Below are positions 27,060 to 56,689 of a stretch of 64,000 nt of DNA, in pieces. Each line of letters opens with the position of its first letter. The stretch's first letter is position 1. Position numbers and translations under genes: made by a program. The notes beneath the pieces were generated by a model. The model was not told the origin of the DNA. It ran no database searches and saw nothing but the letters and a program-made list of their open reading frames with translations. Source of the DNA: Octopus sinensis (lineage: Eukaryota); assembly GCF_006345805.1 (NCBI RefSeq), contig NC_042998.1:9486001-9550000 (forward strand), given 5' to 3'.

Positions 27060-27119
<60 letters not shown>

Positions 27120-27487
27120 GTATATATATATATATATGTATATATATGTATATATATATATATGTATATATATGTATATATATATATATGTATATATATG
27201 TATATATATATAATGTATATATATGTATATAATGTATATATATGTATATATGTATATATGTATATGTATGTATATGTATATATATAATATGTATATATAT
27301 GTATATATATATATTGTATATATATGTATATATATATATATGTATATATATGTATATATATATGTATATATGTATATGTATATGTATATATATATATGTA
27401 TATATATGTATATGTATATGTATATATATGTATATGTATATATTGTATATGTATATATATATATGTATATATGTATATATATATATG

Positions 27488-27522
<35 letters not shown>

Positions 27523-27720: not shown

Positions 27721-28050
27721 TATGTGTGTCTGTGTCCCCCAGCATCACTTGACAACCGATGATAGTGTGTTTACGTCCCCCGACACTTAGCAGTTTGGCA
27801 AAAGAGACCGATAGAATAAGTACTAGGCTTCCAAAGAATAAATCCTGGGGTCGATTTGCTCGACTAAAGGCGGTGCCCCAGCATGGCCACAGTCAAATGA
27901 CTGAAACAAGTAAGTTTCTTGGTAGGCTTTTTTGATGTTTATAAAGGTGTTAAAATGTTTTTACTTTATTCCTTGTGACCTGACAAAAGTTGAAGGATTG
28001 TTTGGCAACTGGTTGTGGTAGCTAGGTATGTGGAACAGAAGGTGATGTAG

Positions 28051-36031: not shown

Positions 36032-36900
36032 AAAAATTCTAAGTCAAGAGCACAGGTTTGTTGATATTTACACGCGACATTTTAAATGTTATTGTTGCAG
36101 TTAATGAAACTATTCATGACAATGTGCCACTATTTCTTATTTTGTGTACCCTTAACGAACTTCGTGCCGAAGAATGAAAATAAAATTTTGCTGCTAATTA
36201 CAACTCATTAGAAAAAAACCCAACAGACATCGTACTTGTAAAATGATGTTGTCACGTGTTCACATTCAAAATGAAGTCGCTGACTTTTGAAACTTTGCAA
36301 AATATTAACGTAGAGGAAAACTATCACTCACGACTAAGTTATTTATTGCAAACAAGTTTAGCTATTACAAATAATTACATAATTACGACGCCATTCTGGT
36401 TTGAAGAGGTAAATGTATACAAAATGAGGAAGAAGCTCTGCAAAAGAAGGAAACCACCCTAAGCCACTGAAGAAATTTGAGTCACTAATTGTAAAAGATT
36501 ACTGAGTATCTACATAAATATAAATTAGCAAATTCTCACGTAAGAGTCGTTTAAAGCTGATCTAACTAAAGATTGCCAACCAGTATTCTACACTGGGAAA
36601 ATAAAAAGAGAATCGGTTGTAAAGCAATTGATATCGACTATTTTCATTCTGCGGCTGGAAAGACGTTCAGACGTGACACTTTGAAGCATAGTCTCTTAAT
36701 ATTGCCGAAGTCATAAAGAAATGAGTCTCCATCTTAAGACAAATGTACATTAAACCAAAACAGGAAATATCGTGGTAAGATGAATTGCTCAGCCTAAAAT
36801 GTAAACACTTTTAAAATACCGAAAGAATTACAGATAAAAGCGTAACTGTTGCATATCATTGCTATTCATGATAAAGATAAACTTTCATGAAAATATATTT

Positions 36901-36916
36901 GGCCCTGAAAAGGGCC
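36901..36916 (-). promoter_or_regulatory. Histone 3' stem-loop GGCCCT-TTTC-AGGGCC (copy 1)
   Basis: Canonical 6-bp stem and 4-nt loop about 30 nt after the stop codon. Confidence 0.95.
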
Positions 36917-36945
36917 GTTGATAGAGAAATTACTACAGCAAGTGT

Positions 36946-37305
36946 TTATTCGCTGCTAGTGTATTTAGTGATTGCCTTCGTACCCTCTGACATTGCGTGT
37001 TTGGCCAATTGGCCAGGAATCAAAAGCCGAACGGCAGTTTGAATCTCTCGACTACTGATGGTCGAACGTCTGTTGTACTGAGCCAAACGACTGGCTTCGG
37101 CAGCGATTCTCTCGAACAAATCGTTAACGAAGCTGTTCATGATGATCATCGCTTTGCTGGAGATTCCAGTATCAGGATGGACCTGTTTCATAACCTTATA
37201 GATATAGTTGGAATAGCTTTCTTTCCTCTTTCTCTTTACTTTCTTGCTTTTCGATCCGGCTAAATTTGGCTTGACGGGTTTCTTGATATCTTCGCTGTCT
37301 GACAT
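36946..37305 (-). CDS. H2B: Divergent histone H2B variant, copy 1 (119 aa, [10 protein letters not shown]...TKYTSSE)
   Basis: Intact intronless histone-fold ORF with ATG at 37303-37305. It has a 3' stem-loop and an upstream TATA/CCAAT/E-box. Confidence 0.96.
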
Positions 37306-37359
37306 CTTCAACGATCACTGCAAGCTCTACGAATGATTAGCTGATCTCTGGCAACTGAC

Positions 37360-37441
37360 TTTATATCTAGAGCGTAGGCACAAACGGAAAGTAACTGTTT
37401 GGCGCGCTTGAATTTCATTGGTTGAAATAGTTTCTCACGTG
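37360..37441 (-). promoter_or_regulatory. H2B copy 1 promoter: TATAAA (37360-65), CCAAT (37417-21), CACGTG (37436-41)
   Basis: The same motif order and the intervening AAGCGCGCCAAAC recur upstream of copy 3. Confidence 0.75.
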
Positions 37442-37564
37442 ATCAGCATACTTGAGCCTACCTGAAATCCAATTTTTTTTTTCTGTCCCCTCTGTGTTAA
37501 GCCTTATGTGGCTAATAAAGAAAGTAATTATACTCTATATATTGTGTGTGTACGTATGTATGTA

Positions 37565-37644
<80 letters not shown>

Positions 37645-37811
37645 TATAACATTGATGTATTAAATAATAATTTAACACAAATATTCAGTAAACATTGTTA
37701 TATTCAAAGTGGCTGTATTGACTATATAAACAGGTAGATAATTTTATCAGTCATGTAATTAATTATAATTAGTAAGATGTGAGATAATAAAGATAAGGCA
37801 ATAGGAAAATA

Positions 37812-37867
<56 letters not shown>

Positions 37868-37868
37868 G

Positions 37869-37949
<81 letters not shown>

Positions 37950-37980
37950 AGAAGTATTGGGGGTGTTGTACATATTTAAT

Positions 37981-38188
37981 ATATATGAAAGAAAAAAGAT
38001 GTTCAGAATGCTGGATGGTTGTAAAAATATATATTTATTTACATATCACATAGTTTCATCAGAAAATCTGATGAAACTACAGGAGTAGTTGAAAGCGCTA
38101 ATATGAAGTAATAATATATGATATGTAAATAAATATATATTTTTACAACCATCCAGCATTCTGAACATCTTTTTTCTTTCATATATAT
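37981..38188. repeat. TA-embedded palindromic element surrounding the hammerhead motif
   Basis: About 70-bp near-perfect inverted arms (37981-38050 and about 38118-38188) plus an inner 12-bp inversion. Confidence 0.9.
38063..38110 (+). ncRNA. Minimal type-I hammerhead ribozyme motif (Penelope-like class)
   Basis: CUGAUGA (38068-74), stem II AACUAC/AGGA/GUAGUU, GAAA (38091-94), palindromic GCGC, then UA cleavage triplet ending at 38100. Stem I is weak. Confidence 0.68.
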
Positions 38189-38325
38189 ATTTGGGTATTA
38201 TCTGGTAGTTGATCATTGATTAAGGTGTGTTTCTCCATTTTCTTATTTTGTATATATATATATATATATATATATACAAACATACACATTCATAGATTCA
38301 TATATACAGACACACAAACACTACC

Positions 38326-40988
38326 CCCCAGCAGAGGCTAGTCATTAGTGATTTTAAGTTCAAGGCCAGAAGGATACCAAGAAGCAGACCAATCCAAAAA
38401 AGAAGGATTTGGAAGCTAAAGAACCCTTCACATGGCCAGAGATTTAGGGACATCCTCATCAAGAAATTTGATGAGAGGGAGGAGGAGCTACCTTTGGACA
38501 TAGAAGGTAGCTGGAAATTCCTATGGGACAGTTTGCTGAGTGCCACAGACTAAGTCTGCAGATGGTGCAAAGTCACTTCCAGACCTGGAGTGGAATAGTA
38601 TGATTGACAAAGCCATTAGAGCAAAGAAACAGGCGTGGAAGGGTGGGGGTAGCAGGGAGCTGTACCAGGTAGCCAAAAGGGAGGCTGGGCAGCAGGTATA
38701 CATAGCCAAGGGTGAAGCAAAAAAGAAGAAGTTTGCCAATGTCCAGTGATGTGAGGACCAAAGAACTGAGGTATTTCAGATTGTAAGACAGTGTGTGAGA
38801 GAAAATTGTGAACTGCTGAACATGGAGAATGAATGGGAGGAGGAGAGCCCATCAAATGTAGCCCCAGTAGAAAGACCAGCTATCCGAATAGACAGCTCCC
38901 TTGTAGATAAAGCAATTAAGGGTATAAAGCCAGGAAAACCCCCAGCCCATCAGGAATAACTGCTGAGATGCTTAAAACATCTGGTGATGTGGGCTTTGGC
39001 CTAATCACCTGCATTGTAAACCAGGTAGTTCATGATGGAGTCATATCCCATGACTGGCGTAGCAGCACCATAGTCAACTGCTACAAGGGTAAATAAAGGT
39101 GATGCTCTAGATAGAAATAACTACAAGGGTATCAAACTACTGGATCAGGTGATGAAGGTCACAGAGAGGGTCATAACCCATCTCATTAGGATGAGAGTCT
39201 GCTTAGATGAGATGCAGGTCGGTTTTGTGCCGGGTAGAAGCACCACTGATGCCATATTCTTGGTTTGACAACTGCAGAAGAAATACCTAGCAAAAGATTA
39301 AACCCCTGTACTTAGCTTTTGTGGGCTTGGAGAAAGCCTTTGACAGGGTTCCCCAATCCCTTATCTGGCAGGCGATGCGGAAACTGAGGATTGACAAATG
39401 GTTTATAAGGGCTGTACAGGCCCTATACAGAGAGGCCATTAGTAAGGTTAGGATTGGCAATGAGTATAGTGAAGAATTCCAGGTAGAAGTAGGGGTTCAC
39501 CAAGGTTCAGCCCTCAGCCCCCTTTTATTCATCATAGTCCTCAAGGCAATATCAGGAATTCAAGATGGGTTTCCCCTGGGAGCTCCTCTATGCTGATGAC
39601 CTGGCCCTCATAGCAGAATCACTACCAGAACTAGAAAAGAAATTGAGTGTGGAAGCAAGGTTTAGAATCAAAAGGCCTTAGAGTCAATGTAGCAAAAACC
39701 AATGTTCAAGTAAGCAGGAAAGCAAACACATTGCATCCCTGCTTGATCTGTAGAAAAGGTGTGGGTAGAAACTCCATAAGATGTACCCAGTGTAAGCTAT
39801 GGACACATAAGAGGTGCAGCAACATCAAAGGAAGATTAACCGAGAAGACAACTTTCGTGTGTGGCAGATGCACAGAGGCAATAAACACTACAGATGCTCA
39901 GAAAACAGATTCCATCACATGCCAAGGGGAGCAACTAGATGTAGTTGATAGCTTCCACTACCTAGGTGACCAAGTTAGTAGTGGGGGTGGATGCTCAGAG
40001 AGTGTTACCACTAGAATAAGAATAGCCTGGGCAAAGTTCAGAAAGCTTCTACTTCTACTGGCGACAAAGGGCCTCTAGCTCAGAGTGAAAGGTAGATTGT
40101 ATGACGCATGTGTGCGAACTGCCATGCTTCACGGCAGTGAAACATGGGCCATGACTGCGGAGGAAATGCATAGGCTCAAAAGAAATGAAGCTAGCATGAT
40201 CCGCTGGATGTGTAATGTCAGTGTGCACACATGACAGAGTGTAAGCACCCTGAGAGGAATTTTGGACATAAGAAGCATAGGATGTGGCATGCAAGAGAGA
40301 TGTTTGCGCTGGTATGGTCATGTACTATGGATGGATGAGGAGATATATGCGAAGAAGTGCCAATCCCAAACTGTTGAAGGAATCTGGAGTAGAGGTAGAC
40401 CCAGGAAGGCATGGGACGAGGTGGTCAAGCATGACCTTCGAACGTTGGGCCTCAAGGAGGCAATGACAAAAGACCGAGACCTCTGGAGATATGCTGTGAC
40501 TGCGAAAACCTGGCAAATAGAGTTCACAGCTGTATCTTACACCAGTTTCGCATAACCACCTCCAGCCCATTCAAAAGTACCTTGGATTGTAGGGCGACCT
40601 GCTGTCCTTGAGGAGACCTATTGAGTCAAGTACATCAACATCAAAATGAAAATCAAATGGAAATTGCAGTTGTGATACTCATGCCGGTGGCATATAAAAA
40701 GCCCCATCCAGACGTGGCCGATGCCAGCGCCACCTTGATTGGCTTCCATGCCGGTGGCACATAAAAAGTATCAGCCAATCATGACCATTGCTAGCCCCCT
40801 CTGGCCCGTGCCGGTGGCACGTAAAAAGCACCCAATACACTCTGTAAAGTGGTTGGCGTTAGGAAGGACATCCAGCTGTAGAAACACTGCCAGATCAGGC
40901 TGGAGCCTGGTGTAGCCTCCTGGCTTCCCAGACCCTGGTCAAACCATCCAACCCATGGAAAACAGACGTTAAAGGATGATGATGATGA
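38326..40988 (+). mobile_element. Decayed RTE-clade LINE (end of APE, RT with PHD-like insert, (GAT)n tail)
   Basis: LEKAFDRVP, GVHQGSALSPLLF, YADD, YLG, WYGHV motifs. Many stops and frameshifts. Confidence 0.9.
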
Positions 40989-40990
40989 GT

Positions 40991-42702
40991 AATGCTCTAA
41001 ACAAAAATAATTATAGAGGCATCAAATTGATGGACCAGATGATGTAAAGTGCAGAAAAGGTCATAGCTCAATTAATTAGGAAGAGAATTAGTATAGATGG
41101 GATGCAGTTTGGATTTGTGCCAGAGAGAAGCACCACTGGTGCTATCTTCCTGGTGAGGCAACTGCAGAAGGAATACTTGGCCAAAAATAAACCTCTGTAC
41201 CTGGCTTTTGTTGGAGAAAGCTTTTCTCTTATCTGGTGGGCAATCTGGAAGCTAGGGATAGATGAGTGGTTAGTGAGAGCTGTACAAGCCATGTACAGGG
41301 ATGTTGTTAGTAAGGTGAGAATTGCTAATGAGTATAGCAAGGAGTTTAGTGCACAAATAAGAGTCCACCATGGTTCAGTTCTTAGTCCCCTCTTATTTAT
41401 CATATAACTGAGGAATTTTGACTTGCTGCCCTTGGGAGCTCCTCTATGCCAATGACTTTGTTCTTACTGCTGCATCACTACCAGAACTAGGGAAGGAATT
41501 TCAGGCATAGAACCACAACTGGAATCAAAATGCCTTAGAGTTAATTCAGCAAAGACCAAAGTATTGGTAAGTAGAAAAACAGCCAAGTCACAGACCTCTT
41601 CAGGGAAATGGTTCTGCTCGATATGTAGAAAAAGTGTCAGGAGAAACTCCATAAAGTGTATCCAGTGCAAGCTACGGGCACATAAGAGGTGCAGCAGTAT
41701 CGCTGGAAGACTAACAGAAAAAGTAGTCTTTACATATGGCAGATGTGCAGCTACATTGAACACCAGGAATGTACAAAAATAGACTCCCTTAAATATCAGA
41801 GGGATCCTTAGAAGTAGTAGGCACTTTCTGTTACTTAGGTGAACAAGTTAGTAGTGGGGGAGGTTGATCTGAAAGCATAGCTACTACAATAAGAATAGGC
41901 TGGACAAAGTTCAGAGAGCTACTACCTCTGTTAGTAATGAAGGATCTCTCCCACCTTCAGAGTGAAAGGCAGATTGTACGATGCCTGTGTACGAACAGCT
42001 CTGCTACATGACAGTGAGACATGGACTGTGACTACTTAGAATATGCAAAGGCTTGAAAGAAATGAAGGCGGTATGCACCACTTGATGCATATACGACAGT
42101 GTTAGTGATTTGAGAGAAAAGAACTGGGTACATAAGGCATCAAGTGGAGCGTGCAAGACAGAAGGCTGTGCTGATACTGCCATGTAATGCATATGAATGA
42201 AGACAGTTGAATCAAGAGGTGCCAGTCTCTAATTGTAGAGGGAACATGTGGAAGGGGCAGATCCAGGAAGACGTGGGAGAAAGTGGTGAGAAAGGATCAA
42301 CAAACTTTGGGACTCACAGAGGGGACGACGGGACTGAGACTCCAGGCAGTTTGCTGTGCTTGAGAAGCCACGTCGAGCTAAGTAAAAGCTTGGTTGTCCT
42401 TGCATATAGGTTTGTCCCCTGCGTCCCTCTCCAGCTGAGCAGCCCTAATCTTGTAGGCTCGTAGGTGCTGGTGCCACGTAAAAAGCATCAGTACCAGTGC
42501 CACATGTTGGTGCAGCGTAAAAACACCCAGTACACTCTGTAAAGTGGTTGGCTTTAGGAAGGGCATCCAACCGTAGAAACCATGCCAAGACAGACAAAGA
42601 GCCTGGGCAGTGCTCCAGCTGGCCAGCTCCCATCAAACCCATCCCAGCATGGAAAACAGACATTAATTGATGATGATCATGCAGCTGATGATGATGATGA
42701 TG
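40991..42702 (+). mobile_element. Second, more decayed RTE copy in tandem
   Basis: QFGFVPERSTTGAIF, VHHGSVLSPLLF, the same Cys/His insert and a (GAT)n tail. Confidence 0.85.
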
Positions 42703-42840
42703 GGGGGAGGAGGAGGAGAAAGAGTGGGGAGGATATACATACATTTGTGTGTTAAATTCTTTAACACATCTAGCTGTATTATAAAAATAATTACATATTT
42801 TGAAACACTATTTCAACAAAAACATATCAATATTATTCTT

Positions 42841-43437
42841 AAATCAAATCAAAATCGATGAACATCAATGGAATTTGGCACGTAACAAACACCATCCGAT
42901 CGTGGCCATGCTAGCCTTGCCTGGCCTCCGTGCCGGTGGCACATAAAAAACACCATCCGAGCGTGGCCGTTCGCCAGCCTCGTCTGGCACCTGTGTCGGT
43001 GGCACATAAAAAAAACACCATCCGAGCGTGGCCGTTCGCCAGCCTCGTCTGGCACCTGTGAAGGTGGCACGTAAAAAAAACACCATCCGAGCGTGGCCGT
43101 TCGCCAGCCTCGTCTGGCACCTGTGAAGGTGGCACATAAAAAAAACACCATCCGAGCGTGGCCGTTCGCCAGCCTCGTCTGGCACCTGTGTCGGTGGCAC
43201 ATAAAAAAAACACCATCCGAGCGTGGCCGTTCGCCAGCCTCGTCTGGCACCTGTGAAGGTGGCACGTAAAAAGCACCCACTACAGTCTCGGAGTGGTTGG
43301 CGTTAGGAAGGGCATCCAGCTGTAGAAACACTGCCAGATCAGACTGGAGCCTGGTGCAGCCTTCTGGCTTCCCAGACCCCAGTTGAACCGTCCAACCCAT
43401 GCTAGCAAGGAAAACGGACGTTAAACGATGATGATGA
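42841..43437 (+). mobile_element. RTE 3'-end element with internal ~63-bp tandem array and 40-bp target-site duplication
   Basis: Identical direct repeats at 42801-42840 and 43438-43477, and a (GAT)n tail. Confidence 0.88.
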
Positions 43438-43624
43438 TGAAACACTATTTCAACAAAAACATATCAATATTATTCTTCTATGTATATATACCTAATTGTA
43501 TACCTTATATACTTCTATATGCCCCCATCTACATTACTAAATAATAGCGCTCCTATTCTTTTTTACACCCTATTCTCTATTTACTTCTGTCTTTGAACTT
43601 CTAATTTTTAATTTCATATTCATA

Positions 43625-43921
43625 CTAGCATTATTGCCCAGCGTTGCTCGGGTTTGTAAGGGAAATAACTATATAAGCATTTTTAGAGTTACTTCCCTTA
43701 TATATTAGCAAAAAAATGCATTAAAAATGGGAAAAAATGATGGTAAATTTTTTTTTAAATCGTAGACTCATCGTAGACGCGCGCTAATACCCAGAAGGGC
43801 TCGATATGAATCACGACTATAAGATACCCGCTTTTGGTTAAACTGCACCGCAAAATGTGGGAGTAGTTAGGAATCTAAATCGTATGAGACAGACACACAA
43901 CTTCACTTTTATATATAAAGA
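43625..43921 (-). mobile_element. Non-autonomous Helitron-like element
   Basis: TC...CCCGAGCAACGCTGGG hairpin...CTAG; no TSD. Confidence 0.78.
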
Positions 43922-44206
43922 TATCTTTTTGTTGATATCAATCCCAATATTTCGTACATGCTGTTGTTTTTTCTCTATCTCTAGATTGTTAAAACGGTGT
44001 CATAATGTGATTATGACATCACAATATCAGTAACGTTTATTTAGAAAATGTTATGAATTGGGCTTTGATGTCAAAAAATTTTCAGTCTTTTTCCAACTTC
44101 CGTCATGACTTAAGACTTTGGGATATGTGAGTGAGCCGCAGGGTTCACTCAAATATCTAAAGATTCGTTTTACGTGAACATCACCTGTTAGGAAGGGTGG
44201 CTTTTT

Positions 44207-44485
44207 TCTCATAAATAAGTGACAAACTGAGTAGACACCGCAGGAAATTGTTGTTGACAAACAACAGTAGAAATTGTATTCACCTCAATAGATGTCATTG
44301 ATTGGTTGAAATTGCCGAAATGCAAGAAATTTAACAACAAATATCTTACAAACCGTAGAATTTTCTCAAGAATGCCAAGAGAAAAAGATGTTTTATGTAA
44401 CACATTCTACCAGTTTACGAAGTTTAAAAGTGTTTAGTTACAAAGAAATTATTGTAAAAATCTGCCGGTCAAAATGAAAAGATCC
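44207..44485. mobile_element. One-ended GGATCTTT MITE upstream of H2B copy 2
   Basis: Right TIR ...CCGGTCAAAATGAAAAGATCC. Confidence 0.75.
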
Positions 44486-44906
44486 GAAAGGTTAAATTAC
44501 CAGACAGCTGAAATGAGGCTGGGGGTATGGAAGTATTATTAACAAGAAACCAAGTAAAAGAACTTGAAAAAGAACTTAACAACGTTTATATGTTAGTAAG
44601 GAAGAATATAAACTCAGACAAGAGATATGAACTTGAGAAGAGGTATGGGGGGAAAACTAGAGGACCACGTAATTTTCGAAATACTGTAAGAGGAGGACAT
44701 AGGATAAGAGTACAGGTAAGTGATGTTATCCGATGGGGCGGGTAACATCACTTTCATCTTTCATTTTCACCCTCTCATTTTTATCATACATTTTTTTTTT
44801 TTGGCATTTTATGTCCCCAATGTTTTGTTTGTTTTTATTTATCTTTGTCAGCCCGTCCTGGGTAATAAAGAAATTGCATTCGTAGAGCTTACAGTGATCG
44901 TGGACG

Positions 44907-45260
44907 ATGTCAGACAGCGAAGATATCAAGAAACCCGTGAAGCCAAATTTAGCCGGATCGAAAAGCAAGAAAGTAAAGAGGAAAGAAAGCTATTCCAACT
45001 ACATCTATAAGGTTATGAAACAGGTCCATCCTGATACTGGAATCTCCAACAAAGCGATGATCATCATGAATAGCTTCGTTAACGATTTGTTCGAAAGAAT
45101 CGCTGCCGAAGCCAGTCGTTTGGCTCAGTACAACAGACGTTCGACCATCAGTAGTCGAGAGATTCAAACTGCCGTTCGGCTTTTGATTCCTGGCCAATTG
45201 GCCAAACACGCAATGTCAGAGGGTACGAAGGCAATCACTAAATACACTAGCAGCGAATAA
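44907..45260 (+). CDS. H2B: Divergent histone H2B variant, copy 2 (117 aa)
   Basis: Intact ORF nearly identical to copy 1 (6-bp indel in the basic tail, ISS to ISN). Confidence 0.95.
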
Positions 45261-45289
45261 ACACTTGCTGTAGTAATTTCTCTATCGAC

Positions 45290-45305
45290 GGCCCTTTTCA
45301 GGGCC
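45290..45305 (+). promoter_or_regulatory. Histone 3' stem-loop (copy 2)
   Basis: GGCCCTTTTCAGGGCC. Confidence 0.95.
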
Positions 45306-45943
45306 AAATATGTTTTCATGAAAGTTTATCTTTATGAGTAACAATGGTATGTAACCATAGAATATTTATTCACCTGGATAAAGAGAATCTCTTACCATAC
45401 ATAGAGACATGACAGAGTAGGGTATGACAGGTCCTATTTCATTCACAAATTTTGTTCATATCCTTGTTCACAACATTATTCTTATATTCCACGCAATCGA
45501 GGTAGACTCTGCTTTAATCTTTTTAATACTATGAAATTAACGTACTGGTCATGTACTGTAGTCGATTGTATCCTCCCATAAAATATATCAGAAATTATCT
45601 AATATATTGAACGTCGAGAAAGACTGGTGTGATGGCACCTGAATGAAGCAACTATTCAGAATGTTTTACGTTGCTTCCAAGGAGTATTTTAAAGCTAGTT
45701 GTGCTGAACTGCGTAAGTTATCAAAACATGGATGTTTGGATTTAAGATTAACTACCGTAATAAAGGAATTATTTTCGAAAATATTTTTTATTTGAAGAGA
45801 AGAATAATTTTCAAGATAAGACTGCTTTCGGGCCGAGACAAGTGTAGAAGAGGGGGTAGTCCTTTCAAAATTCTGACATTCGCAGGCCTTCCGTTGTCTA
45901 TGGGAGATTCGGGTCGACATACCAGTTGAATCCTAGACCATTG

Positions 45944-45981
<38 letters not shown>

Positions 45982-46670
45982 AAGTATTATATATACAAAC
46001 ACATGTATGTATACGATACGTACATACGAGAATGTGAATTGAATTTAGTTGTCATGATGTCATAATATCGGTCAAGTTAATTTGGAAAATGTTATAAATT
46101 GGGCTTTGAATTTAAAAAAAGTTCAGTCTTTTCTTACCGTGGGCTGGCGAGTTCACTCAAATATCTAGACTCGTGTTGTGTCAGCATCACCTAGGTTTTT
46201 GGTGCTTATGAAGTCGGCTTTTTCAGCTTCCACTTCTTAAACACCCTCTGTCGATGCTGGTCTGTACCAAAACGTAAATTCAAATTGAACGGTTTTGTTA
46301 CACCACCGTATGCGTTTTAATAAAGCTTACCCGCTTCTACTTGATGTCTGTGTAGTTTCAACCAAAAATAGTCGATATATTCCTATAGAATATTTAATTG
46401 AACACACACTTGTGTACCAGAAAAGCTAGAGTGACATTATACATTCTGTAGAACGTTTTGTCGTCGTAATGTCGTAATCACGCCAAAATGTCAATTTCCA
46501 AATCCTGTTTTCTGATTGGATAAAAATTACCAAACTTTAAACTTCTGAAGCATTTTCCAAACTTTTTCGGGGGCAAGTGAATAGCGTGAAAAATTACATC
46601 AATATTCCAAATTTTAAAATTTCAAGAAGTGAAGCCAAATAGAAAAGATCCCTCCTTTACTTTGTAATGT

Positions 46671-46758
46671 GGATCTTTTCACTTTGACCGGCAGATTTTA
46701 AAAATAATTTTTTGTAACTAAACACTTTTTCCAATGTGGATCTTTTCTGAAAAGATCC
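46671..46758. mobile_element. Internally deleted GGATCTTT MITE with 8-bp TSD TGTAATGT
   Basis: TSD at 46663-70 and 46759-66. It contains fused ends GGATCTTTTC-T-GAAAAGATCC. Confidence 0.75.
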
Positions 46759-46984
46759 TGTAATGTTTCTATGTATGATTGGAGATCTGCTTTCGGAATA
46801 CCTTCGTCTACACCGTCACTAACCTTCAGTTATTTTCTAAAAACGAAAGGTGCCATCATTTGGCCATTCGTACATGTATGCTGACCAATAACCAGTAGAC
46901 GGGACTTGCAGCTATCGACGTGGGATTCCTCAATGTGGTTGCTCAACATGCTAGAAATAACAGCCAAATTACATATACTACTAA

Positions 46985-47369
46985 TCTTTATATATAAAAG
47001 TGAAGTTGTGTGTCTGTCTCATACGATTTAGATTCCTAACTACTCCCACATTTTGCGGGGCAGTTTAACCAAAAGCGGGTATCTTATAATCGTGATTCAT
47101 ATCGAGCCCTTCTGGGTATTAGCGCGCGTCTACGATGAGTCTACGATTTAAAAAAAAATTTACCATAATTTTTTTCCATTTTAATGCATTTTTGGCTATT
47201 ATATAAGGGAAGTAACTCTCTAAAAATGTCTACGATGAGTCAACGATTTAAAAAAAAATTACCATCATTTTTTTCCATTTTTAATGCATTTTTTTTGCTA
47301 TTTCTCTCTAAAAATGCTTATATGGTTATTTCCCTTACTAACCCGAGCAACGCCGGGCGATACTGCTAG
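46985..47369 (+). mobile_element. Non-autonomous Helitron-like element with internal duplication
   Basis: A|TC start, CCCGAGCAACGCCGGG hairpin, CTAG|T end. Confidence 0.8.
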
Positions 47370-47586
47370 TACATTATAAAACAATGGATACATTGAGCAA
47401 TATAATTTTTTTTTAAATACAAACCTACGCGTCTAGAATTTTAAAAAATGTTGCTGCGAAAATCAGAGGATAAATTACTGAATCTGAAAAATAGTCATAT
47501 AAAAATTGTAAAACAATTTCAGATGAATACAATAGTCACATATCATTGCTACTCGTTAAAAGATAAACTTTCGTCAAAATATATTT

Positions 47587-47690
47587 GGCCCTGAAAAGGG
47601 CCGTACATTCAAGAAAGTATAGTACCAAGTATTTATTTGGTAACTACTTTCGTACCCTCAGATAGTGCGTGTTTGTCTTTAAGTGTACCA
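47587..47690 (-). pseudogene. H2B: H2B 3' remnant (KHALSEGTKVVTK*) with intact stem-loop at 47587-47602
   Basis: Minus-strand translation matches the H2B C-terminal helix. The downstream flank resembles that of the pseudogene at 50 kb. Confidence 0.75.
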
Positions 47691-47826
47691 AATACGACAT
47701 TGAGTTTATGAATTGAAGGTGCCTATTCTGCAACCGACAAATATCGCGTGTGTAACAGTGCTTAAATAATGATACCTATAATTTCATAACTAAAAAATCG
47801 TTACTTAGTAAAACTATTAGACTTTG

Positions 47827-48224
47827 GGATCTTTTCGGTTTGAACGGCAGTTTTTCTAGCGGTGTCATATGAAATTGTCACCCATAATTATGACCCTAGT
47901 ATCGATCTATTGTATTTCAATCTCTTTTAGCGTTAGGGGTGGGAGAAAGGTATCTTTTTTTCTTCAGAAATGTAAATAAACCCAATCTGTTTCTTAAACG
48001 AGGGACATATTCATACGGCACAGAATGTTTTCACCTCAATAGGCGTCATTGATTGGTTGAAATTGCCAGAAAAACAACAAATATCTTACAAACTATAGAA
48101 TTTTTTCAATAAAGCCAAAAGAAAAAGATGTTTTATAAACACATTCTACCAGTATACGAAGTTTAAAAGTGTTTAGTTACGTGGAAATTATTTTTAAAAA
48201 CTGCCGGTCAAACCGAATAGTACC
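47827..48224. mobile_element. GGATCTTT-TIR MITE with perfect 8-bp TSD AGACTTTG
   Basis: TSD at 47819-26 and 48225-32; imperfect TIRs. Confidence 0.85.
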
Positions 48225-48343
48225 AGACTTTGTATTCTAAACATTTTCTTTGTCCAGAAATTGTAGCCATAACCAAGTCTACAGTAATATCCTTATGTTT
48301 AGCGCAATCATCGTAGACTGTACTTTTAAACTTTGAAAGAAAA

Positions 48344-49580
48344 TTGACTTCACACATCAGCAAAGTCATGGAACGGATAGTCAGAGGGAAACTAATTGCA
48401 TTCCTTGAAGAAAATAACTTGCTGAATGATACCCAGCGTGGCTTTCGACCAGGTAGGAGCTGCCTGATCCAGATCTTACATTATGACTGGGTGTTGAGGC
48501 GGTTACTCAACAACTCAAATGTGGACGTAATATACCTTGATTTTGCAAAAGCTTTTGACAAGGTAGATCATGGTATGATATTCCACAAACTGCGTGATCT
48601 TGACATAGCTGAAAAACTTGCAGAGTGGTTACATGACTTTCTGAAAGACAGGATTCAGACAGTAGTGTCTAATGGAGCCACCTCTATGAACACACAAATA
48701 GTGAGCGGTGTTCCACAGGGCACTGTCTTGGGACCACTGCTTTTTATAGGGGCTCTATCTGATATGCCCTCAAGTGCACGGATAGCCACCCTTGCAAGCT
48801 ACGCAGATGATACAAAAGTCTCGCAGAAAATCCAGAACCCCAGCGATGTTGCACATCTGCAGCAAGCAGTGTCCAAAACTGAATATGAAACTTACAGGGT
48901 ACACTGGTCCACAGGGAATTTCAATCCCAGAACCTAAATCAGTGAGGGACCTGGGTATAGATATAAGTGATGATACCTCTTTCCAAGTGCACATTACCAG
49001 GATGGCGACAAAGTGCAGACGACTGGCTGGATGGATCCTGAGAACATTCAGAACCAGAAATAAGGAAACCATGATGGTCCTCTGGCGGACATTCGCCCTC
49101 AGCCACCTGGATTACTGCTCACAGCTATGGTCACCCACCAGTGTGAAATTAACAGCGGACCTTGAAGCAATCCAGAGAAGATTCACAAAGAAAATCGTCT
49201 CTTTGCAACTGCTCAGCTACTGGGAAAGGCTGAAACAGCTAGGACTCTACTCCCCGGAGAGAAGGCGGGAGAGGCATGCAGTAATATACATCTGGAAGAT
49301 CCTGGAATGAATTTTCCAGATGTATATTACTGCATGCCTCTCCCGCCTTCTCTCCAGGGAGTAGAGTCCTAGCTGTTTCAGCCTTTCCCAGTAGCTGGAA
49401 GGAACTGTGCCAAATTTTGGCATTGAAAGCTACACCAATGCCAGAACGGGACAACACTGCATAGTGCCAAAGATCCCAGCAACGCCATCGCGCTTCAGGA
49501 CCAGTTACTGCAACAACCTGGGTTTCAGGGGCCCACAGATTTTTAATATTTTCCCAAAGAGCCTGAGGAACCTAGAATCC
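48344..49580 (+). mobile_element. CR1/L2-type LINE RT fragment
   Basis: QRGFRPGRSC, YLDFAKAFDKVDH, SGVPQGTVLGPLLF, YADDTK, LDYCSQLWSP. Disrupted. Confidence 0.9.
49214..49397. repeat. 84-bp fold-back duplication inside the CR1-type LINE
   Basis: 49214-49297 versus 49314-49397, with 1 mismatch. Confidence 0.92.
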
Positions 49581-50155
49581 TATTTCTTGTCAAAATAATT
49601 TTAAAAATTCCCCATTGTGTTATTATGACATCACAATATAGGTAACGTCAAGAAAATGCTATTATTTAGCTTTGATTTCAAGGATTTTTCAATCTCTTCC
49701 CACTGTCTTCGGTGTTTAGAGTCTTGCATAGAGTTAGGCTGTGGAGCTCAACTATATCATGTTTCCAATCAAAGTAGTCCTTTCATTTGCTCATATGCAG
49801 ATGAATAGTGAATAAATTACAAACGACACTTGGAACTATTGACCTGGGAAGGTTGTGGTTGTTCAACATGCTAGAAACAACAGCCAAATTACATTCGAAC
49901 TACGCACGTCCCCAATGTCTTTAAAAATGGAGATATTGGACAATATAATCCAAAATATACAAAATAGACGGGTAGAATTTTTTAAATGAGGATATAAGAA
50001 AATAAATTGCTGAATCTGAAATATGAACAACCATTGAAGAATTCTGAGAGGTTATCAGATAAATATCATCGTTACTCGTTAAAAGATAAATTTTCATGAA
50101 AATATATTTTGGTCCTGAAAAAGGCTGTCGGTCAAGAAAATACAACAGCAAGTGT

Positions 50156-50862
50156 TTATTCGCTGCGTGTATATCTGGTAACTGTCTTCGTACCCTCAGA
50201 TATTGCATGTTTGGCGAATTGACCAGGAAGCAAAGTGGGATAGCACTTTGAATCTCTCGACTACTGATGGTCGAACGTCTGTTGTACTGAGCCAAACGAC
50301 TGGCTTCGACAATGATTCTCTCGAACAAATCGCAACGAAGCTGTTCAAGATGGTTGTTGCTTTTGGATATTCCAGTATCAGGATGGACCTGTTTCATAAC
50401 CTTATAGATATAGTTGGAATAGCTTTTCTTCCTCTTTCTCTTTCTTGCCTTTCAATCTAAATTTGGCTTGACATATTTCTTAATAGCTTCGCGGATCTTT
50501 ACCTTTTGACCGGCAGATTTAGAAAATAATTTTTTGTAACTAAGCACTTTCAAATTTCGCATACTGGTAGAATGTGTCATAAAAAACATCTTTTACTCTT
50601 AGCATTTTTGAGAAAAGTTGTTGACAAACAACAGCAGTAATTTTATTCAGCTGAATACACGTCATTGATCGGTTGAAATTACCGAAATACGACAACTTTA
50701 ACACGAAATAACTTTGTAACCAAACTTTCTCAAAAACGCTAAGAGTAAAAGATGTTTTATATGACACATTCTACCAGTGTACGAAGTTTGAAAGCGTTTA
50801 GTTACAAAAACTTATTTTCTAAATCTGCCGGTCAAAAGGTAAAGATCCCTTTGCTCTGACAT
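50156..50862 (-). pseudogene. H2B: H2B pseudogene with frameshifts, a degenerate stem-loop (50111-50126) and a MITE inserted at 50493-50848 just after the start codon
   Basis: Alignable to the intact copies along its length. ATG at 50860-62; small deletions in ISSKAM and FVNDL; TATA at 50922-27 and CCAAT at 50993-97 upstream. Confidence 0.9.
50493..50848. mobile_element. GGATCTTT-TIR MITE inside the H2B pseudogene
   Basis: About 50-bp TIRs; flanking CTTCGC/CTTTGC duplication. Confidence 0.88.
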
Positions 50863-51298
50863 TATTTACAATAACTGCAAACTATACGAATACATTGCCG
50901 ATCTCCGACAGCTAACTCTTATTTATAGTTAGCTAGTAGACTCCATAGGGAAGTCACTGTTTGGCGGGCTTGACTGTTTTTGCTTCAATTTCATTGGTTA
51001 AAATTGTTTCTCGCGTCAGCATCCTACTTGGAGCTACGTGAAGTCTAATTTGCTTCCACTAAACTATTTTCGATGATAGCTTAAATGATAGATCTGTCAC
51101 GTCTGGTAGCAAGAAAGGAAAGCTACATTCGTTCATTTCGTAACGGTCTTGAGTTTCCAGTAAACTGTATTCATTTTGTAAAATAATTATGAGGGATATT
51201 TTTCTGTTTGGCTACACGCGTGGAAATTGTAAAGTTCAATGATTACTTTACAAAACTACACCAATACGCCAAAAATGAAATCAATTGGAACAAAAACT

Positions 51299-51951
51299 GA
51301 AACGAAAATCCGAAAAAAAAAAAAATAGTGCAACAGGTGTAAAAAAATGTGTAGGAAATGATTAGGAAAAAAAAAAAGAATGCGCGCAAAGCAATGGGAG
51401 GATGGCGAGAGGACTTCGGAAAATTCACAAGATCCGAGTTTTTCCATCATAACTTTTACGAAAATGGCTTTGAAATCTTATACAAATATCTTTCAAAGGC
51501 ATAGATTACGATTACGATATACACAAATATATACGATTATATATATATATACACAAATACGGACGTAGTAGAAAACAGCTACTTAGTTCTGTTCACTACT
51601 CTGATTGACTGGTATTGGCGCAATTTGTCTCTTACTCTATTGCGCGCCAATATGCAACCCAACCAATCGCAGCCTTCTGATAAGGTCACGTGAGACAGTC
51701 TCTTCTAAACTTCCAGTGAGCCGATAGATTTTACCCACAAATTTCTTTGTAATTGTAATGAAAGCCTTTTCAAAGGTATTTCTATACAATTTCATTGCTA
51801 AAAGTTATGAGGGAAAAACTCGGATCTTGTGAATTTTCCGAGGTCTTCTCCCCAGCCTCCCGTTGCTTTGCGTACATTTTTTTTTTTCATTTTCGTTTCC
51901 TACACATTTTTTATACACCCATTGCACCTTTTTTTTTCTGATTTTCGTTTC
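51299..51951. repeat. Diverged ~210-bp inverted arms with a ~230-bp spacer
   Basis: Shared core GGAAAATTCACAAGATCCGAGTTTTTCC is inverted at both sides. Confidence 0.8.
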
Positions 51952-52474
51952 TGGATCAAGTTGTAAACATTAACTGAAAATGGCAATATATATGACAGGC
52001 ATTGCTGGTATGGGCAGTTAAGAAGATTTTTTCGCGACCACATAGTTCTGAGTTCAATTCATGGCATCTTGGGAAAATGTTTTTTTTTTATTATAAACTC
52101 AAAACAATCAGTTTATCATATCTTGTGAGTGGAATTTGATTCGCAGAAATTCCAGAAGTACACCGTATGTGTGTGTGATGTGTGCTGCTGTCATAAAAGC
52201 GTCATCCGAGGTGGACGGTGCTCTCCTACCCTGCCAGCTTTGTTACTGTCCAAAATATATCTTGAGTTGTTGTAAACGGACAGAAATAAACGTAGCCTGG
52301 GTAGTTTTAGTTCATCTAAAAAAGATATTTAATCATTGTGAGTGCACAACCACTGAACAGTGCAATTGTAAGATGCAAAACCAATGTTACCTTTCTGATT
52401 GGTTACTTGCCATAATCAGGAGTATAAGTACTCAACACTATAAGAAGTATAACCATTGAAATTTTCTTTTAGAG

Positions 52475-54420
52475 CAGTGGTTCCTAACCTTTTTACTACC
52501 ACATCTCCCCTAGGAATTTGTCCATCTCTCCATGCCCCCCACCCCACCTGCAACTTTGAATAAAATTCCCTCCCAGATTTTAAAGAAAATGTAAAATATG
52601 TTTTTAGTCTTTTTATTGAATATGAATTAGACACATTATACAAAATATGAATAATTTTAAATATAATCACATTATACAAAAAATGAGATACTTGACACTG
52701 CTTCTTAGCTACAAAATCTTGAATGTGTGGTTGAATGCCAGAGAGCACACAATGTAAGTCCCTTTCAATGTTCAGCATGTTTCTGTTCTTGGTCTTGACA
52801 GCAACAAGCGTGGAAAATGCAGCTTCACAAAGATACGTGGATCCAAACACAGCTAAAATCCAAAGAGCCTGCTGTGAGATCAGAGGATAAACAGGAAGAC
52901 ACTTGATCCAGAACATTTCAAGATCCAGTTCTTTGAAGTCTTCCATAGTTGGGGAGTTGAACTTCAGCTCAAGAAACTCCTCTTGCACTTCATCCAAACC
53001 ATCAATTATTTCACACTGAAATGGGTTCCTGATGAATTTCCAAACTTCCCGCTTTTCATCTATATCTGGGAAGTATCTGATGAATTCTGTTTTCAAGACA
53101 GAGGAGTGATTATCTGTTTCTTCAACTCAGAATCAAGGTTACTGTGAATGAGAGCAGAATCCAAGTAACTAAAACTGATTGTATTTCCCTGCTGAATTCG
53201 ACATTTTCAGAGGTCGAGTTTGGCCATGAAGGTTTGAATGGTGCCGTGGTACGTGAGAATGTTGTTTTTCCCTTGTAGTTTAAGGTTGAAAGAATTTATG
53301 CTTCAAAGATGTCCACCAGGTAAGCTAGAGACAGCTGAAAGCCTTCAGATTGGAACTTATCATTGAGATCTGCTTTCTGTTGCAAATCTAGAAATATTGC
53401 TACTTCTTGTAGTTCATAAAGCCATCCAAGCATGTTCCCCTTTGATAGCCTTTGTACATTTATGTGAAAAAGCAATGCTTTATGTTCAGATTATCTTTAT
53501 GCAACAGTTTGAAAAGATGACTGTTTAAGGTTCTACCTTTAAAAAAGTTGATAACCTTGATAGCCATGTTCAGGACATTTCTCATTTCAGTAGGTAAGGT
53601 TCTGGATGCCAAGGCTTCACGATGAAGTATGCAGTGTGTACCTGCAGCAGATAGATTTTTTTTTCTCTCTCACCCTAGTAATGAATCCAGACTGCAAACC
53701 AAGCCTGGCTGGAGCTCCATCAATATGCATCCCTACCAGAGAATCCCACAAAAGTTGGTTTTCCTGAAAGAAGTTTGATACATCACAAAAAATAGCTGCT
53801 GCTATTGTACAACTATCCATAGAGTGACAGAACAGTATTTTCTCTTTTACACAGTTGCCTGAGACAAAACGAATATATTACCAGTAGCTGAGAACCCTGA
53901 GTGATGTCAGTCATTTCATCACACTGGATGGCAAAAACAGGAGAATCCTCTAACTTGGTTGAGAATTTGATCTTTGGTGTCTTGAGACTGTATTGTTTGA
54001 TAGTGAAATCAGGGAAAGCTTGTTTGCACTATCTTTCCCCAGAACAAGTTCTGCTGCACGGAGTAGACTTGGTTTTATGAGAGACTCTCCAATGTTATGG
54101 CTCTTCTTACTCTTTGCAATCAACATGGTGATCTCACAGCCACTGAAATTTGTTGCCTTAATGCCCTACTGACGCCTAATTTAGCTTGCTTCAAGGAATG
54201 TCTTTTTGTTTCAAAGAATGCCTTGGGCTTCTCTGCAAGAGCAGGACGTGTTGTCCTCAAGTGGTGTTCCAAGCATGAGGGCCACATTCCATCATTGCTT
54301 AAGGTTTTGTAACATATCACACAATGGGGGACTTCTGTATCATCCTTTTGGGAAGACACAGAGCTAAATCGAATATATTCGTCAAGATACTTCCATTTCT
54401 TTGGACTCATTGTAAATTAT
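52475..54420 (-). mobile_element. Decayed hAT (Buster/Charlie, ZBED8/SCAND3-like) transposon
   Basis: BED finger CVICYKTLSN...HH, hATC motif FGSTYLCEAAFS, TIR CAGTGGTTCCTAACCTTTT at 52475 preceded by an nnnTAnnn site. Frameshifted, and the other TIR was not found. Confidence 0.88.
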
Positions 54421-55287
54421 TTGATGTGCAATGGAAAAAACAGAAATGTGGACAAAGATAAGGCAAGTGTAAGGTAATGTCAAGGCCCAAGTTAGAATGC
54501 TTGGAGTAAAAAGTTCTGAAAAAAATTTATAACAAAACATTTGGAATAAAAGTTAAATTAAAAGTTATATGGAAAATTTGAACAATAAAATATTGTATTT
54601 ATTTGTATGAAAATATATTAAAAAAAGTTTCTTTAAAAAAGAAAAGATTTTGCATAGCTTTTAGTTTTATCTAGTACTTTCTGTAACATTTAAATCTGAA
54701 TTTTAGTTTAACATTTGGCTTTATATTATAATTTCATTTCTTACAAAAAAACTTACTATATTTTTAACATAAGCATTTGATATTAAAAAGTTTGGTTTTA
54801 TTGTTAAAATCTTTTATTTTTCCAATCTGTGTTTTAATTTTTTGAGACTTTATTAAATTGAGCAATTACATACTTTTTGTTTTATTTCCTATTTTTAAGT
54901 ATATCATACTTTTCATTTTGCTAAAATTTTACAGAATACAAACAGACCAAATGATTATTGAAAACAAATTTTGAAATTGGCTAAATCAATACTGTATTTT
55001 TTTATTATTAAACTTTAGGATACAAATTCTATTTTTATATTTATGAATGTATTTATTTCAAATGTGATAATCTTTGGCACTTATTCTATTCTATATACAA
55101 ATTTATTCAACACTTATAATTATTTACAAAACTGATACAGTGCACCGGGAATTAAAGGCCATTGCGAAATGAACGAATTTAGTTTTCCTTTTTGGCTACA
55201 AGACTTGACAAAACTATCATTTAAGAATCACGTGGGAAATAGTTTAGTGGAAGTAAACTAAATTCAGGTAGCTTAAAGTAAACTGAT

Positions 55288-55370
55288 CACGTGAGAAACA
55301 ATTTTAACCAATGAAATTCAAGCGCGCCAAACAAGTGACTTGCTTCTGGAGTCTGCTGACAACTATAAAA
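55288..55370 (+). promoter_or_regulatory. H2B copy 3 promoter: CACGTG (55288-93), CCAAT (55308-12), TATAAAA (55364-70)
   Basis: Motifs are shared with copy 1. About 280 bp of 5' flank is alignable to the pseudogene flank. Confidence 0.78.
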
Positions 55371-55427
55371 AGCGGCAGTTGTTGGAGACTGGCAAAGCAT
55401 TCGTAGAGTTTGCAGTCAACGTGAATA

Positions 55428-55787
55428 ATGTCAGACAGCGAAGATATCAAGAAACCCGTCAAGCCAAGTTTAGCCAGATCGAAAAGCAAGAAAGTAAAGA
55501 GAAAGAGGAAAGAAAGCTATTCCAACTATATCTATAAGGTTATGAAACAGGTCCATCCTGATACTGGAATCTCCAATAAAGCGATGATCATCATGAACAG
55601 CTTCGTTAACGATTTGTTCGAGAGAATCGCTGCCGAAGCCAGTCGTTTGGCTCAATACAACAGACGTTCGACCATCAGTATTCGAGAGATTCAAACTGCC
55701 GTTCGGCTTTTGATTCCTGGTCAATTGGCCAAACACTCAATATCTGAGGGTACGAAAGCAGTTACTAGATACACTTGCAGTGAATAA
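55428..55787 (+). CDS. H2B: Divergent histone H2B variant, copy 3 (119 aa, ends [10 protein letters not shown])
   Basis: Intact ORF with promoter motifs and stem-loop. Confidence 0.95.
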
Positions 55788-55814
55788 ACACTTGGTGTGT
55801 TTCCTGAAATCATC

Positions 55815-55830
55815 GGCCCTTTTCAGGGCC
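55815..55830 (+). promoter_or_regulatory. Histone 3' stem-loop (copy 3)
   Basis: GGCCCTTTTCAGGGCC. Confidence 0.95.
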
Positions 55831-55909
55831 AATTATATTTTCATGAAAGTTTATATCTTTATCATGAATAGCTATGATAAACAACCGATATGTTTCTAAC
55901 TAATTTTTT

Positions 55910-56038
55910 GGATCTTTCGGTAAAGCCAAGAGAAAAAGATGATGTTTTATAAACACACTCTACGAGTGTACGAAGTTTAAAATCTTTTAGTTACATAGAA
56001 ATTATTTTTAAAAACTGCCGTTCAAACCGAAAAGATCC
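55910..56038. mobile_element. Short GGATCTTT MITE about 80 bp downstream of the H2B copy 3 stem-loop
   Basis: Both termini are present. Confidence 0.8.
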
Positions 56039-56689
56039 CTTTTTTTCAGTATTCCTTAAGTGTTTAGATTTTAAATCTAGCAATTCTTATTTCTGTAATT
56101 TCCCCCCATTTTTTTTTTTTTTAATGAATGGTGTACACCTGTTCATGTGTATTTGTCGTACAATGCAGAATCGTTTATTTATGAATTCGGCAATATACAG
56201 AGAATAAGTTTCGAATCATCGCAACTGAGCGTCTTTCACAATCTACTCTTTGTGGAGCCAGGTTTATATTGATATCAAATTTTGGAACAAGGCCAGCAAA
56301 TTTGGGGAACGGGGTAAGTCGATAACATCGACCCCAGAGGTCAACTGGTACTTATTTTATCGATCCCGAAAGGATGAAAAGTTAAGTCAGCCTCGGCGAA
56401 ATTTAAACTCAGAATGTTAAGATAGACGAATTTTTCTTCATTAATTTCTTTGGCACGATGTCCTTTGAGGGTACAGTAAATAAGAAACAGTGATACACTA
56501 TAATAAGTAATTTTATTAGCTACTAAATTCACAGTAAACGATGTAAGCAAAATAAATAGAAATAAAAAACTCGAAATAGCGAAAGTGAATGTAAACAAAC
56601 TTGCGCGTAATTTTCAAAAATGCTCTTAACTTGCGATTTCTGGTTGGTGTAGATTACGAAGTATATTTGCAAAAGAACTAATGCGAAAC

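Follow-up and report, generated by a model that had tools for sequence, protein, structure and literature searches.

What are histone H2B genes doing on their own in an octopus genome? The question is raised by a 64-kb stretch of Octopus sinensis DNA (GCA_006345805.1, CM016860.1, ~9.486–9.550 Mb; hereafter the window), for which an initial annotation had claimed three intact H2B open reading frames (ORFs), a pseudogene and a remnant in mixed orientations, with no H2A, H3, H4 or H1 alongside them. To our knowledge, no other core histone has as few known variants as H2B. Solitary histone genes that lie scattered outside the tandem clusters, termed orphons, have been described in sea urchin and Drosophila. 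A 2025 survey lists only three H2B variants across molluscs and gives no details of them in the accessible portion of its text (PMC12210499). Our reading, which we consider probable, is that the window carries a small solitary (‘orphon-like’) family of H2B variants, so far known from the genus Octopus only.

An H2B-only locus

The ORF listing and tblastn searches of the window, with the variant H2B and with human core and linker histones as queries, bore out the claimed inventory of three intact ORFs, a pseudogene and a remnant. The members are ordered and oriented as A minus, B plus, remnant minus, pseudogene minus and C plus:

Copy A, coding sequence (CDS) 36946–37305, unit 36877–37470, minus strand: intact ORF of 119 amino acids; tblastn match 37305–36949
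Copy B, CDS 44907–45260, unit 44877–45355, plus strand: intact ORF of 117 amino acids; tblastn match 44907–45257
3′ remnant, 47511–47675, minus strand: 13-residue tblastn match 47674–47636; 165 bp at the DNA level
Pseudogene, 50063–51193, minus strand: frameshifted tblastn segments 50490–50227 and 50233–50159
Copy C, CDS 55428–55787, unit 55263–55917, plus strand: intact ORF of 119 amino acids; tblastn match 55428–55784

All three ORFs match Pfam Histone PF00125 (E 3e-22 to 8e-21) and their closest solved structures are ordinary H2B chains (E ~1e-51), the best PDB matches all being H2B; these two results assign them to histone H2B. Across the whole 64 kb, human H2A, H3, H4 and the H1 globular domain gave no tblastn match better than E=2, in agreement with the claimed absence of other histone types, and the variant locus holds no multi-type core cluster with divergent H2A–H2B pairing.

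A protein distinct from the canonical octopus H2B

Canonical H2B is encoded in H4–H3–H2A–H2B units both in O. sinensis (P0039) and in O. bimaculoides (P0041), with H2A and H2B divergently paired ~260 bp apart. The O. sinensis quartet lies on another sequence record than the variant locus and, according to PMC12210499, the canonical clusters of O. vulgaris are on OX597823, OX597841 and OX597842, not on OX597815. The variant, unlike the canonical gene, has neither a divergent H2A nor H3 or H4 nearby, lies on another chromosome and differs from it by a synonymous divergence (dS) >1.3; its proposed position outside the canonical cluster is thus upheld.

The two proteins are 84% identical overall and ~88% identical in the fold domain. 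The variant tail is shorter and starts MSDSED; it has 11 basic and 3 acidic residues, a net charge of +8 versus +13 for the canonical tail. Within the fold, the changes relative to canonical octopus H2B are I39N, S60I, S75A, H82Q, K85R, V94I, L102I, E105Q, V111M, V118I and K125E. The MSDSED tail, N39, I60, R85, I102, Q105, M111 and I118 are common to six proteins from three Octopus species. In a sample of 75 other H2Bs taken from search hits, N39, I60, I102, Q105, I118 and E125 do not occur at all and M111 occurs twice, with L102, E105 and V118 invariant in that sample. The variant is therefore a distinct paralog, with diagnostic residues that are conserved across species and absent from the canonical paralogs. 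The canonical O. sinensis H2B does not have the variant’s sequence, P0039 differing in the tail and at ~11 fold positions, and the proposal of a distinct H2B variant family accordingly holds. The proposed signature of seven fold substitutions needs trimming: I39N, G60I and E105Q stand, but L45M and I69L are present in canonical octopus H2B and hence are not variant-specific, and H82Q and K125E vary between species, H82Q being absent from the O. bimaculoides members, one of which ends in K and not in E.

Variant and canonical H2B share M45, L69, S90, the order of their promoter blocks, an intronless ORF, a stem-loop and the 3′ flank ATATTTTCATGA. The variant protein evolves faster, with 4–5 changes in the fold between O. 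sinensis and O. bimaculoides as against none in the canonical protein. Two subtypes can be told apart within the family: copy C, the pseudogene and the remnant have K120 replaced by R, and copies A and B share the other. Copy B also lacks one KR of the KRKRK run.

Orthologs in other octopuses

A colinear O. vulgaris locus on OX597815.1 (~96% DNA identity) contains copy A, annotated as CAI9718800.1, copy B, whose protein is identical in the two species, and the pseudogene. UniProt contains at least three O. bimaculoides members of the family (A0A0L8H502, A0A0L8H5A0 and A0A0L8H5L6), for which the comparison covers protein differences only. In single-sequence and profile searches of 5.8 billion proteins, a set in which many cephalopod genomes have no annotated proteins, the only variant-type proteins were those of O. 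sinensis, O. vulgaris and O. bimaculoides (265 and 257 bits); a canonical Argonauta H2B came next among the single-domain matches at 205 bits, a gap of ~50 bits. The 42-residue N-terminal tail, used by itself as a protein query, gave no matches, no candidate having three 5-residue words in common with it, and this negative carries no information on where the tail occurs. Judged by these matches, the family appears so far to be confined to the genus Octopus, and the diagnostic residues common to all three species fit the lineage-specific variant that had been proposed.

We found no description of the variant family, its signature or its locus in the literature, and no paper on an octopus H2B variant in the literature on octopus testis, spermatogenesis and histone H2B. 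As far as its accessible text goes, PMC12210499 counts two H2B variants in the oyster M. gigas, one in O. vulgaris and none for O. sinensis; the O. vulgaris entry may belong to the present family, its sequence, locus and properties not being given in that text. Stem-loop-bearing H2B variants and solitary orphon genes are already known kinds; the octopus family, its signature and its locus are previously undescribed in the literature found.

Copies A and C are complete gene units

Copies A and C are 87.1% identical over 660 nt, and the 650–660 bp that they share comprise ~160 bp upstream, the CDS and ~130 bp downstream. The regulatory features of the intact copies are:

Copy A promoter, minus strand: E-box CACGTG 37441–37436; CCAAT 37421–37417; GCGCGCC 37407–37401; TATAAA 37365–37360
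Copy C promoter module, plus strand: 55263–55427
Stem-loop regions: copy A 36921–36877 (minus); copy C 55810–55854 (plus); copy B 45285–45329 (plus)

The predicted start site of copy A is the A of TCATTC at 37334, a likely initiator with TATAAA 31 nt upstream, which predicts a 5′ untranslated region (UTR) of ~29 nt. Both promoters can be aligned, one block at a time, with the canonical H2B promoter of each of the two octopus species, the blocks following in the same order (TCACGTGA, ACCAATGAAA, a GCGCG(CC) box resembling an E2F site, and CTATAAA(TA), CTATAAATA), and residual similarity to the canonical promoter extends between the blocks. Coupling to S phase is hinted at only by the CCAAT and E2F-like GCGCGCCAAA promoter motifs.

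At the 3′ end, a perfect GGCCCT-TTTC-AGGGCC stem-loop, GGCCCTTTTCAGGGCC, stands 30–32 nt after the stop codon and is preceded by TCAAC, as in canonical genes. Against Rfam Histone3 (RF00032, gathering score 34), copies A and C score 36.5 and 34.0 bits, and copy B and the remnant 27.7 bits. We rejected the gathering score as a criterion for a functional stem-loop, since in the two canonical octopus histone loci (L004 and L005) a single stem-loop reaches it, at 36.7 bits; the variant stem-loops score as well as the canonical octopus ones. In having an intronless ORF with a 16-nt stem-loop within ~50 nt of the stop codon, these genes match the replication-dependent type. Farther downstream, CATGAAAGTT, 13–22 nt beyond the stem, resembles CGTAAAGTT of octopus H3 and is a candidate downstream element only; an AATAAA overlaps the variant stop codon. 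Retention of the stem-loops, with a degenerate one in the pseudogene, had been part of the initial annotation and is what we find (GGCCCTTTTCAGGGCC versus the degenerate AGCCTTTTTCAGGACC).

The retained promoter, intronless ORF and stem-loop make it most likely that A and C would be transcribed and processed like replication-dependent histone mRNAs, via SLBP and U7 and without poly(A). The most economical reading of the alignments is that the unit represents the H2B half of an ancestral, divergent H2A–H2B gene pair of the canonical kind. The family would have kept the H2B-proximal promoter (E-box, CCAAT, E2F-like GC box and TATA), the intronless ORF and the 3′ stem-loop, and would have lost its H2A partner and moved to another chromosome.

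In public annotation, the variant genes appear under generic names. The exact copy A protein is annotated in O. sinensis (P0013), and copy C has no correct protein entry. The NCBI ‘late histone H2B.L4-like’ protein of O. sinensis (P0004, 150 amino acids) is a chimeric model spanning 44907–55787 (L007:10001–20773), in which copy B, read from an internal Met, is joined over ~10 kb to the latter half of copy C.

Copy B: gene, duplicate or retrocopy

Copy B differs from these units in its 5′ region. It is 95.3% identical to copy A over 488 nt, from −30 to +98, the homology running from the predicted transcription start (CATTCG, 44877) to ~98 nt past the stop codon. Upstream lies a 63-codon ORF without a Pfam match that ends at a consensus splice donor (CAG/GTAAGT, 44715/44716), followed by a polypyrimidine tract and an AG acceptor at 44850–44851, 55 nt before the copy B ATG; the frame of this ORF does not run into H2B.

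Copy B might therefore not be an independently regulated gene, being instead an RNA-mediated retrocopy or a 5′-truncated DNA duplicate that, if expressed, would borrow a promoter upstream, with a possible exon at 44527–44715 and the acceptor at 44850–44851. The exact coincidence of the homology boundary with the predicted transcription start, and the unrelated upstream sequence with its splice-like signals, speak for such an origin. However, at its 3′ end the homology continues for ~55 nt after the stem-loop and so overruns the usual cleavage site, and copy B shows neither a poly(A) tract nor a target-site duplication; a classical retrocopy is thus not demonstrated. Moreover, the frame of the upstream ORF would not match that of H2B, and O. 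vulgaris has the same structure, with no non-synonymous and four synonymous changes between the species. We regard this account of copy B as possible, though less likely than its opposite.

Selection, gene death and gene conversion

Selection was gauged from dN/dS (dN, non-synonymous divergence) by the Nei–Gojobori method, with non-synonymous : synonymous differences given for each pair:

Copy A versus copy B: dN/dS 0.06 (1 : 4)
Copy B versus copy C: dN/dS 0.17 (8 : 11)
Copy A versus copy C: dN/dS 0.32 (9 : 7)
Copy B, O. sinensis versus O. vulgaris: dN/dS 0 (0 : 4)

Values of 0.06–0.32 among the copies are far from the dN/dS of about 1 that would speak against a selected variant. Counting each variable site once, the five intact sequences have undergone 12 synonymous and 10 non-synonymous events, where neutrality predicts ~80% non-synonymous (synonymous : non-synonymous ~1:4; binomial P=4e-4). 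Between the variant and canonical H2B, the fold region has a saturated dS of 1.3–2.7, a dN of 0.065–0.083 and an omega of ~0.02–0.05; the canonical H2Bs of O. sinensis and O. bimaculoides differ by a dS of 0.24 and a dN of 0. A shift in codon usage was considered as the cause of the saturated dS and rejected (GC content at third codon positions 0.48–0.54 versus 0.58–0.60). Saturated dS together with low fold dN implies that the variant lineage is old relative to the split of the Octopus species and has been mostly under purifying selection. Such an age predicts older orthologs, which is in tension with matches confined to Octopus.

The non-coding members record how copies are lost. The parts of the pseudogene are:

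Promoter remains, 50855–51193, minus strand: degenerate E-box and interrupted GC box
Palindromic repeat, 50493–50854: ~360 bp, inserted after codon 3
CDS remains, 50159–50492, minus strand: several frameshifts
Stem-loop, 50111–50126, minus strand: degenerate, AGCCTTTTTCAGGACC

The pseudogene reaches 51193 because the ~360-bp repeat splits it after codon 3. The remnant retains the last ~17 codons, with a 15-bp deletion, and the 3′ UTR; its DNA match is 71.6% over 183 nt (E=8e-21) and its stem-loop, GGCCCTTTTCAGGGCC, is intact at 47563–47607. The pseudogene is also found at the syntenic place in O. vulgaris (L001:15626–15874). The two pseudogenes (50159–50492 in O. sinensis) differ far above the ~4% genomic divergence: the O. 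vulgaris one has a large internal deletion and a middle section nearly identical to the intact genes, and the O. sinensis one is heavily mutated where its counterpart matches the intact copies. Sequence comparison thus suggests that the O. vulgaris middle section is a recent gene-conversion tract.

Two further patterns concern the intact copies. The O. bimaculoides paralogs share V69, H76, N20 and N117 (alignment positions) against all O. sinensis and O. vulgaris copies, and the flanks of A and C are ~20–25% diverged as against a dS of 0.10–0.13 in the CDS. As read from these alignments, the family evolves by birth-and-death combined with gene conversion: gene death because a pseudogene disrupted by a transposable element (TE) and a 3′ remnant exist, homogenization because paralogs share species-specific residues, because of the tract in the O. 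vulgaris pseudogene and because flanks and CDS diverge unequally. The birth-and-death evolution proposed earlier is supported as far as gene death goes; in its pure form it does not survive the species-specific shared residues and the conversion-like tract. Turnover of the family proceeds by local duplication in both orientations, disruption by TEs and gene conversion between copies.

A conserved family or decaying orphons

Several observations weigh against a conserved, functional variant family. Of the ten non-synonymous events, eight fall on copy C. In O. vulgaris, copy A (CAI9718800.1, L003:10001–10360) carries a D-to-H change (D45H) in the invariant HPDTG motif, which could reflect relaxed constraint, a polymorphism or an assembly error, and O. 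bimaculoides P0124 carries P103R; together, the two changes are a hint that constraint has loosened in some of the copies. Open ORFs could also be maintained by gene conversion, with no need for selection on every single copy. The promoter is missing from copy B, which lacks the entire E-box/CCAAT/GC/TATA module. The stem-loop is followed by AAATA, not ACCCA, and the U7-complementary element is a candidate only. NCBI offers no model across B and C other than the chimera P0004. Lastly, exact-protein look-ups for transcript-derived contigs returned only two genome assemblies; this result is not evidence against expression, because read-derived assemblies lack the canonical octopus H2B as well.

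These points shade into a rival explanation, in which the copies are decaying orphons without present function whose ORFs are open through youth or through mutual repair by gene conversion. One pseudogene, one remnant and one promoter-less copy among five members would fit decay, as would the odd substitutions in single copies (D45H in O. vulgaris A, P103R in P0124, S85I and K120R in C), the conversion-like tract in the O. vulgaris pseudogene and the look-ups that matched genome assemblies but no transcripts. Decay is hard to reconcile, however, with a dS saturated against the canonical gene at a fold dN of ~0.07, which implies strong purifying selection over most of the family’s history, with the synonymous excess among the copies (P=4e-4) or with the diagnostic residues kept in three species; the promoter motifs and stem-loops of A and C, moreover, are intact despite the ~20–25% divergence of their flanks. 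We therefore hold decay without function to be improbable.

The solitary variant family that we favor is anchored in its gene anatomy, its conservation in three species, the purifying selection on the lineage and its distinctness from canonical H2B, all of which are observed. Like histone orphons, it consists of single-type genes with their own promoters and 3′ signals that lie among repeats and TEs, and pseudogenes are frequent; unlike them, the octopus copies are a conserved subfamily with a diagnostic signature under purifying selection, and not near-identical strays of the canonical gene.

Predicted consequences for the nucleosome

The changes cluster in the N-terminal tail and in the αC helix next to the acidic patch. 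Of the two acidic-patch residues that H2B contributes, one is E105, and E105A abolishes H2A ubiquitylation by RING1B–BMI1 on human nucleosomes; K120 is the site of monoubiquitylation and K125 a site of acetylation (PMC12448860). The variant would be expected to adopt the usual H2B fold and to be incorporated into nucleosomes together with ordinary H2A, because the fold-stabilizing core and the HBR-like KRKRKESYS segment are kept. Variant nucleosomes would then present a shorter and less basic N-terminal tail with an acidic tip and several lysines lost, and an αC/acidic-patch surface altered by E105Q, V111M, V118I and K125E; subtype C, lacking the K120 ubiquitylation site (K120R), is predicted to escape ubiquitylation there. 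Binding of acidic-patch or αC readers and contacts between tail and DNA would change. The strongest form of this scenario, to which we assign a low probability, is that octopuses make, from a replication-type promoter and a stem-loop mRNA, a nucleosomal H2B with an altered acidic-patch/αC surface, and with it chromatin refractory to E105- or K120-dependent readers and writers.

When such a protein would be made is the point at which a germline role comes in. By analogy, the variant might be a germline or sperm-stage H2B, a possibility raised in the initial annotation, or an early-embryo one, restricted to gonad or cleavage stages like mammalian H2B.1/TH2B or the stage-specific H2Bs of sea urchins. 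In H2B.1 the changes are mostly in the tail and E105 is kept. The analogy draws on the many lineage-specific H2B variants that are germline-restricted and on the fact that H2B.1 (TH2B/TSH2B, ~85% identical to canonical H2B) and H2B.W likewise retain stem-loops (PMC8857922), and histone expression in molluscs is described as generally gonad-biased in PMC12210499. However, germline expression is shown for mammalian H2B.1 and H2B.W, whereas the octopus variant is known from genes alone, and its sequence holds no germline pointer: its promoter module is that of the canonical, proliferation-type H2B. Its less basic tail is the opposite of that of sperm H2Bs with their basic SPKK extensions. The label ‘H2B, gonadal’ is derived from similarity and is carried by canonical octopus H2B too.

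The mammalian variants also have an independent, vertebrate-specific origin. H2B.1 lies within a histone cluster, paired with H2A.1; the octopus variant has no histone-cluster location, no partner H2A in the window and no vertebrate orthology. An origin independent of H2B.1/TH2B is indicated by the cephalopod-type residues M45, L69 and S90, which the variant shares with octopus canonical H2B. A gonad- or cleavage-restricted role seems to us rather doubtful, if less so than decay without function.

Genomic surroundings

The H2B copies are surrounded by fragments of reverse transcriptases of elements without long terminal repeats (non-LTR), a hAT remnant and other repeats. TE remains occur at 39321–41407, 48344–49310, 52416–54410 and 62059–62427 and comprise non-LTR reverse-transcriptase fragments, one of them with a PHD-like zinc finger, a C-terminal dimerization domain of a hAT transposase and a mariner-type transposase fragment. 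A near-perfect hairpin of ~155 nt (49228–49382) lies within a reverse-transcriptase-bearing element; its matches to unrelated miRNA families, on both strands, stay below threshold (best 49 bits, cut-off 73), and it is most likely an inverted repeat of the TE. A partly self-complementary repeat family of ~240–360 bp resembles miniature inverted-repeat transposable elements (MITEs) or foldback elements, one copy splitting the H2B pseudogene and others lying 0.1–0.4 kb from copies B and C and the remnant:

MITE- or foldback-like repeat copies: 19598–20154, 44250–44486, 48026–48220, 50493–50854, 55922–56042 and 57998–58446

Carriage of the H2B units by a transposon is unsupported, the homology between copies covering only ~480–660 bp (gene, promoter and 3′ flank), and the palindromic repeat, common elsewhere in the window, shows no sign of having mobilized them.

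The nearest ordinary neighbor of the family in both O. sinensis and O. vulgaris is an IQGAP-like gene (CH, IQ and RasGAP domains; annotated in O. vulgaris), whose 3′ end maps to ~21376–24192 (from L003:17517–20360). In O. vulgaris the gene ends ~9 kb from copy A, at a point that corresponds to ~22 kb in the O. sinensis window. An imperfect (TA)n-type dinucleotide array at 24860–27723 (~2.9 kb, 1438 copies, 70% matches) gives rise to a GC trough of 18–26% and positive GC skew, and a minisatellite at 42887–43272 (65-bp unit, 6 copies, 93% matches) results in overlapping repetitive ORFs on the minus strand. The window contains no tRNA genes, and in an Rfam scan of it no family except Histone3 reached threshold.

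Significance

The locus is a compact example of an orphon histone family evolving by duplication, TE disruption and gene conversion. The divergence between its copies and canonical H2B offers a natural experiment on the roles of H2B E105, K120 and the basic tail, and chromatin biology gains from it a concrete and cheap target, for which one peptide antibody and one recombinant nucleosome would serve. Cephalopods, known for unusual genome organization and neural complexity, are here seen to carry an H2B variant that is conserved and under selection, bears a stem-loop and differs at an acidic-patch residue. If the strongest form of the scenario above were true, it would amount to a replication-coupled marking of chromatin, in particular cell types, that is insensitive to PRC1-type H2AK119 ubiquitylation and to H2B monoubiquitylation.

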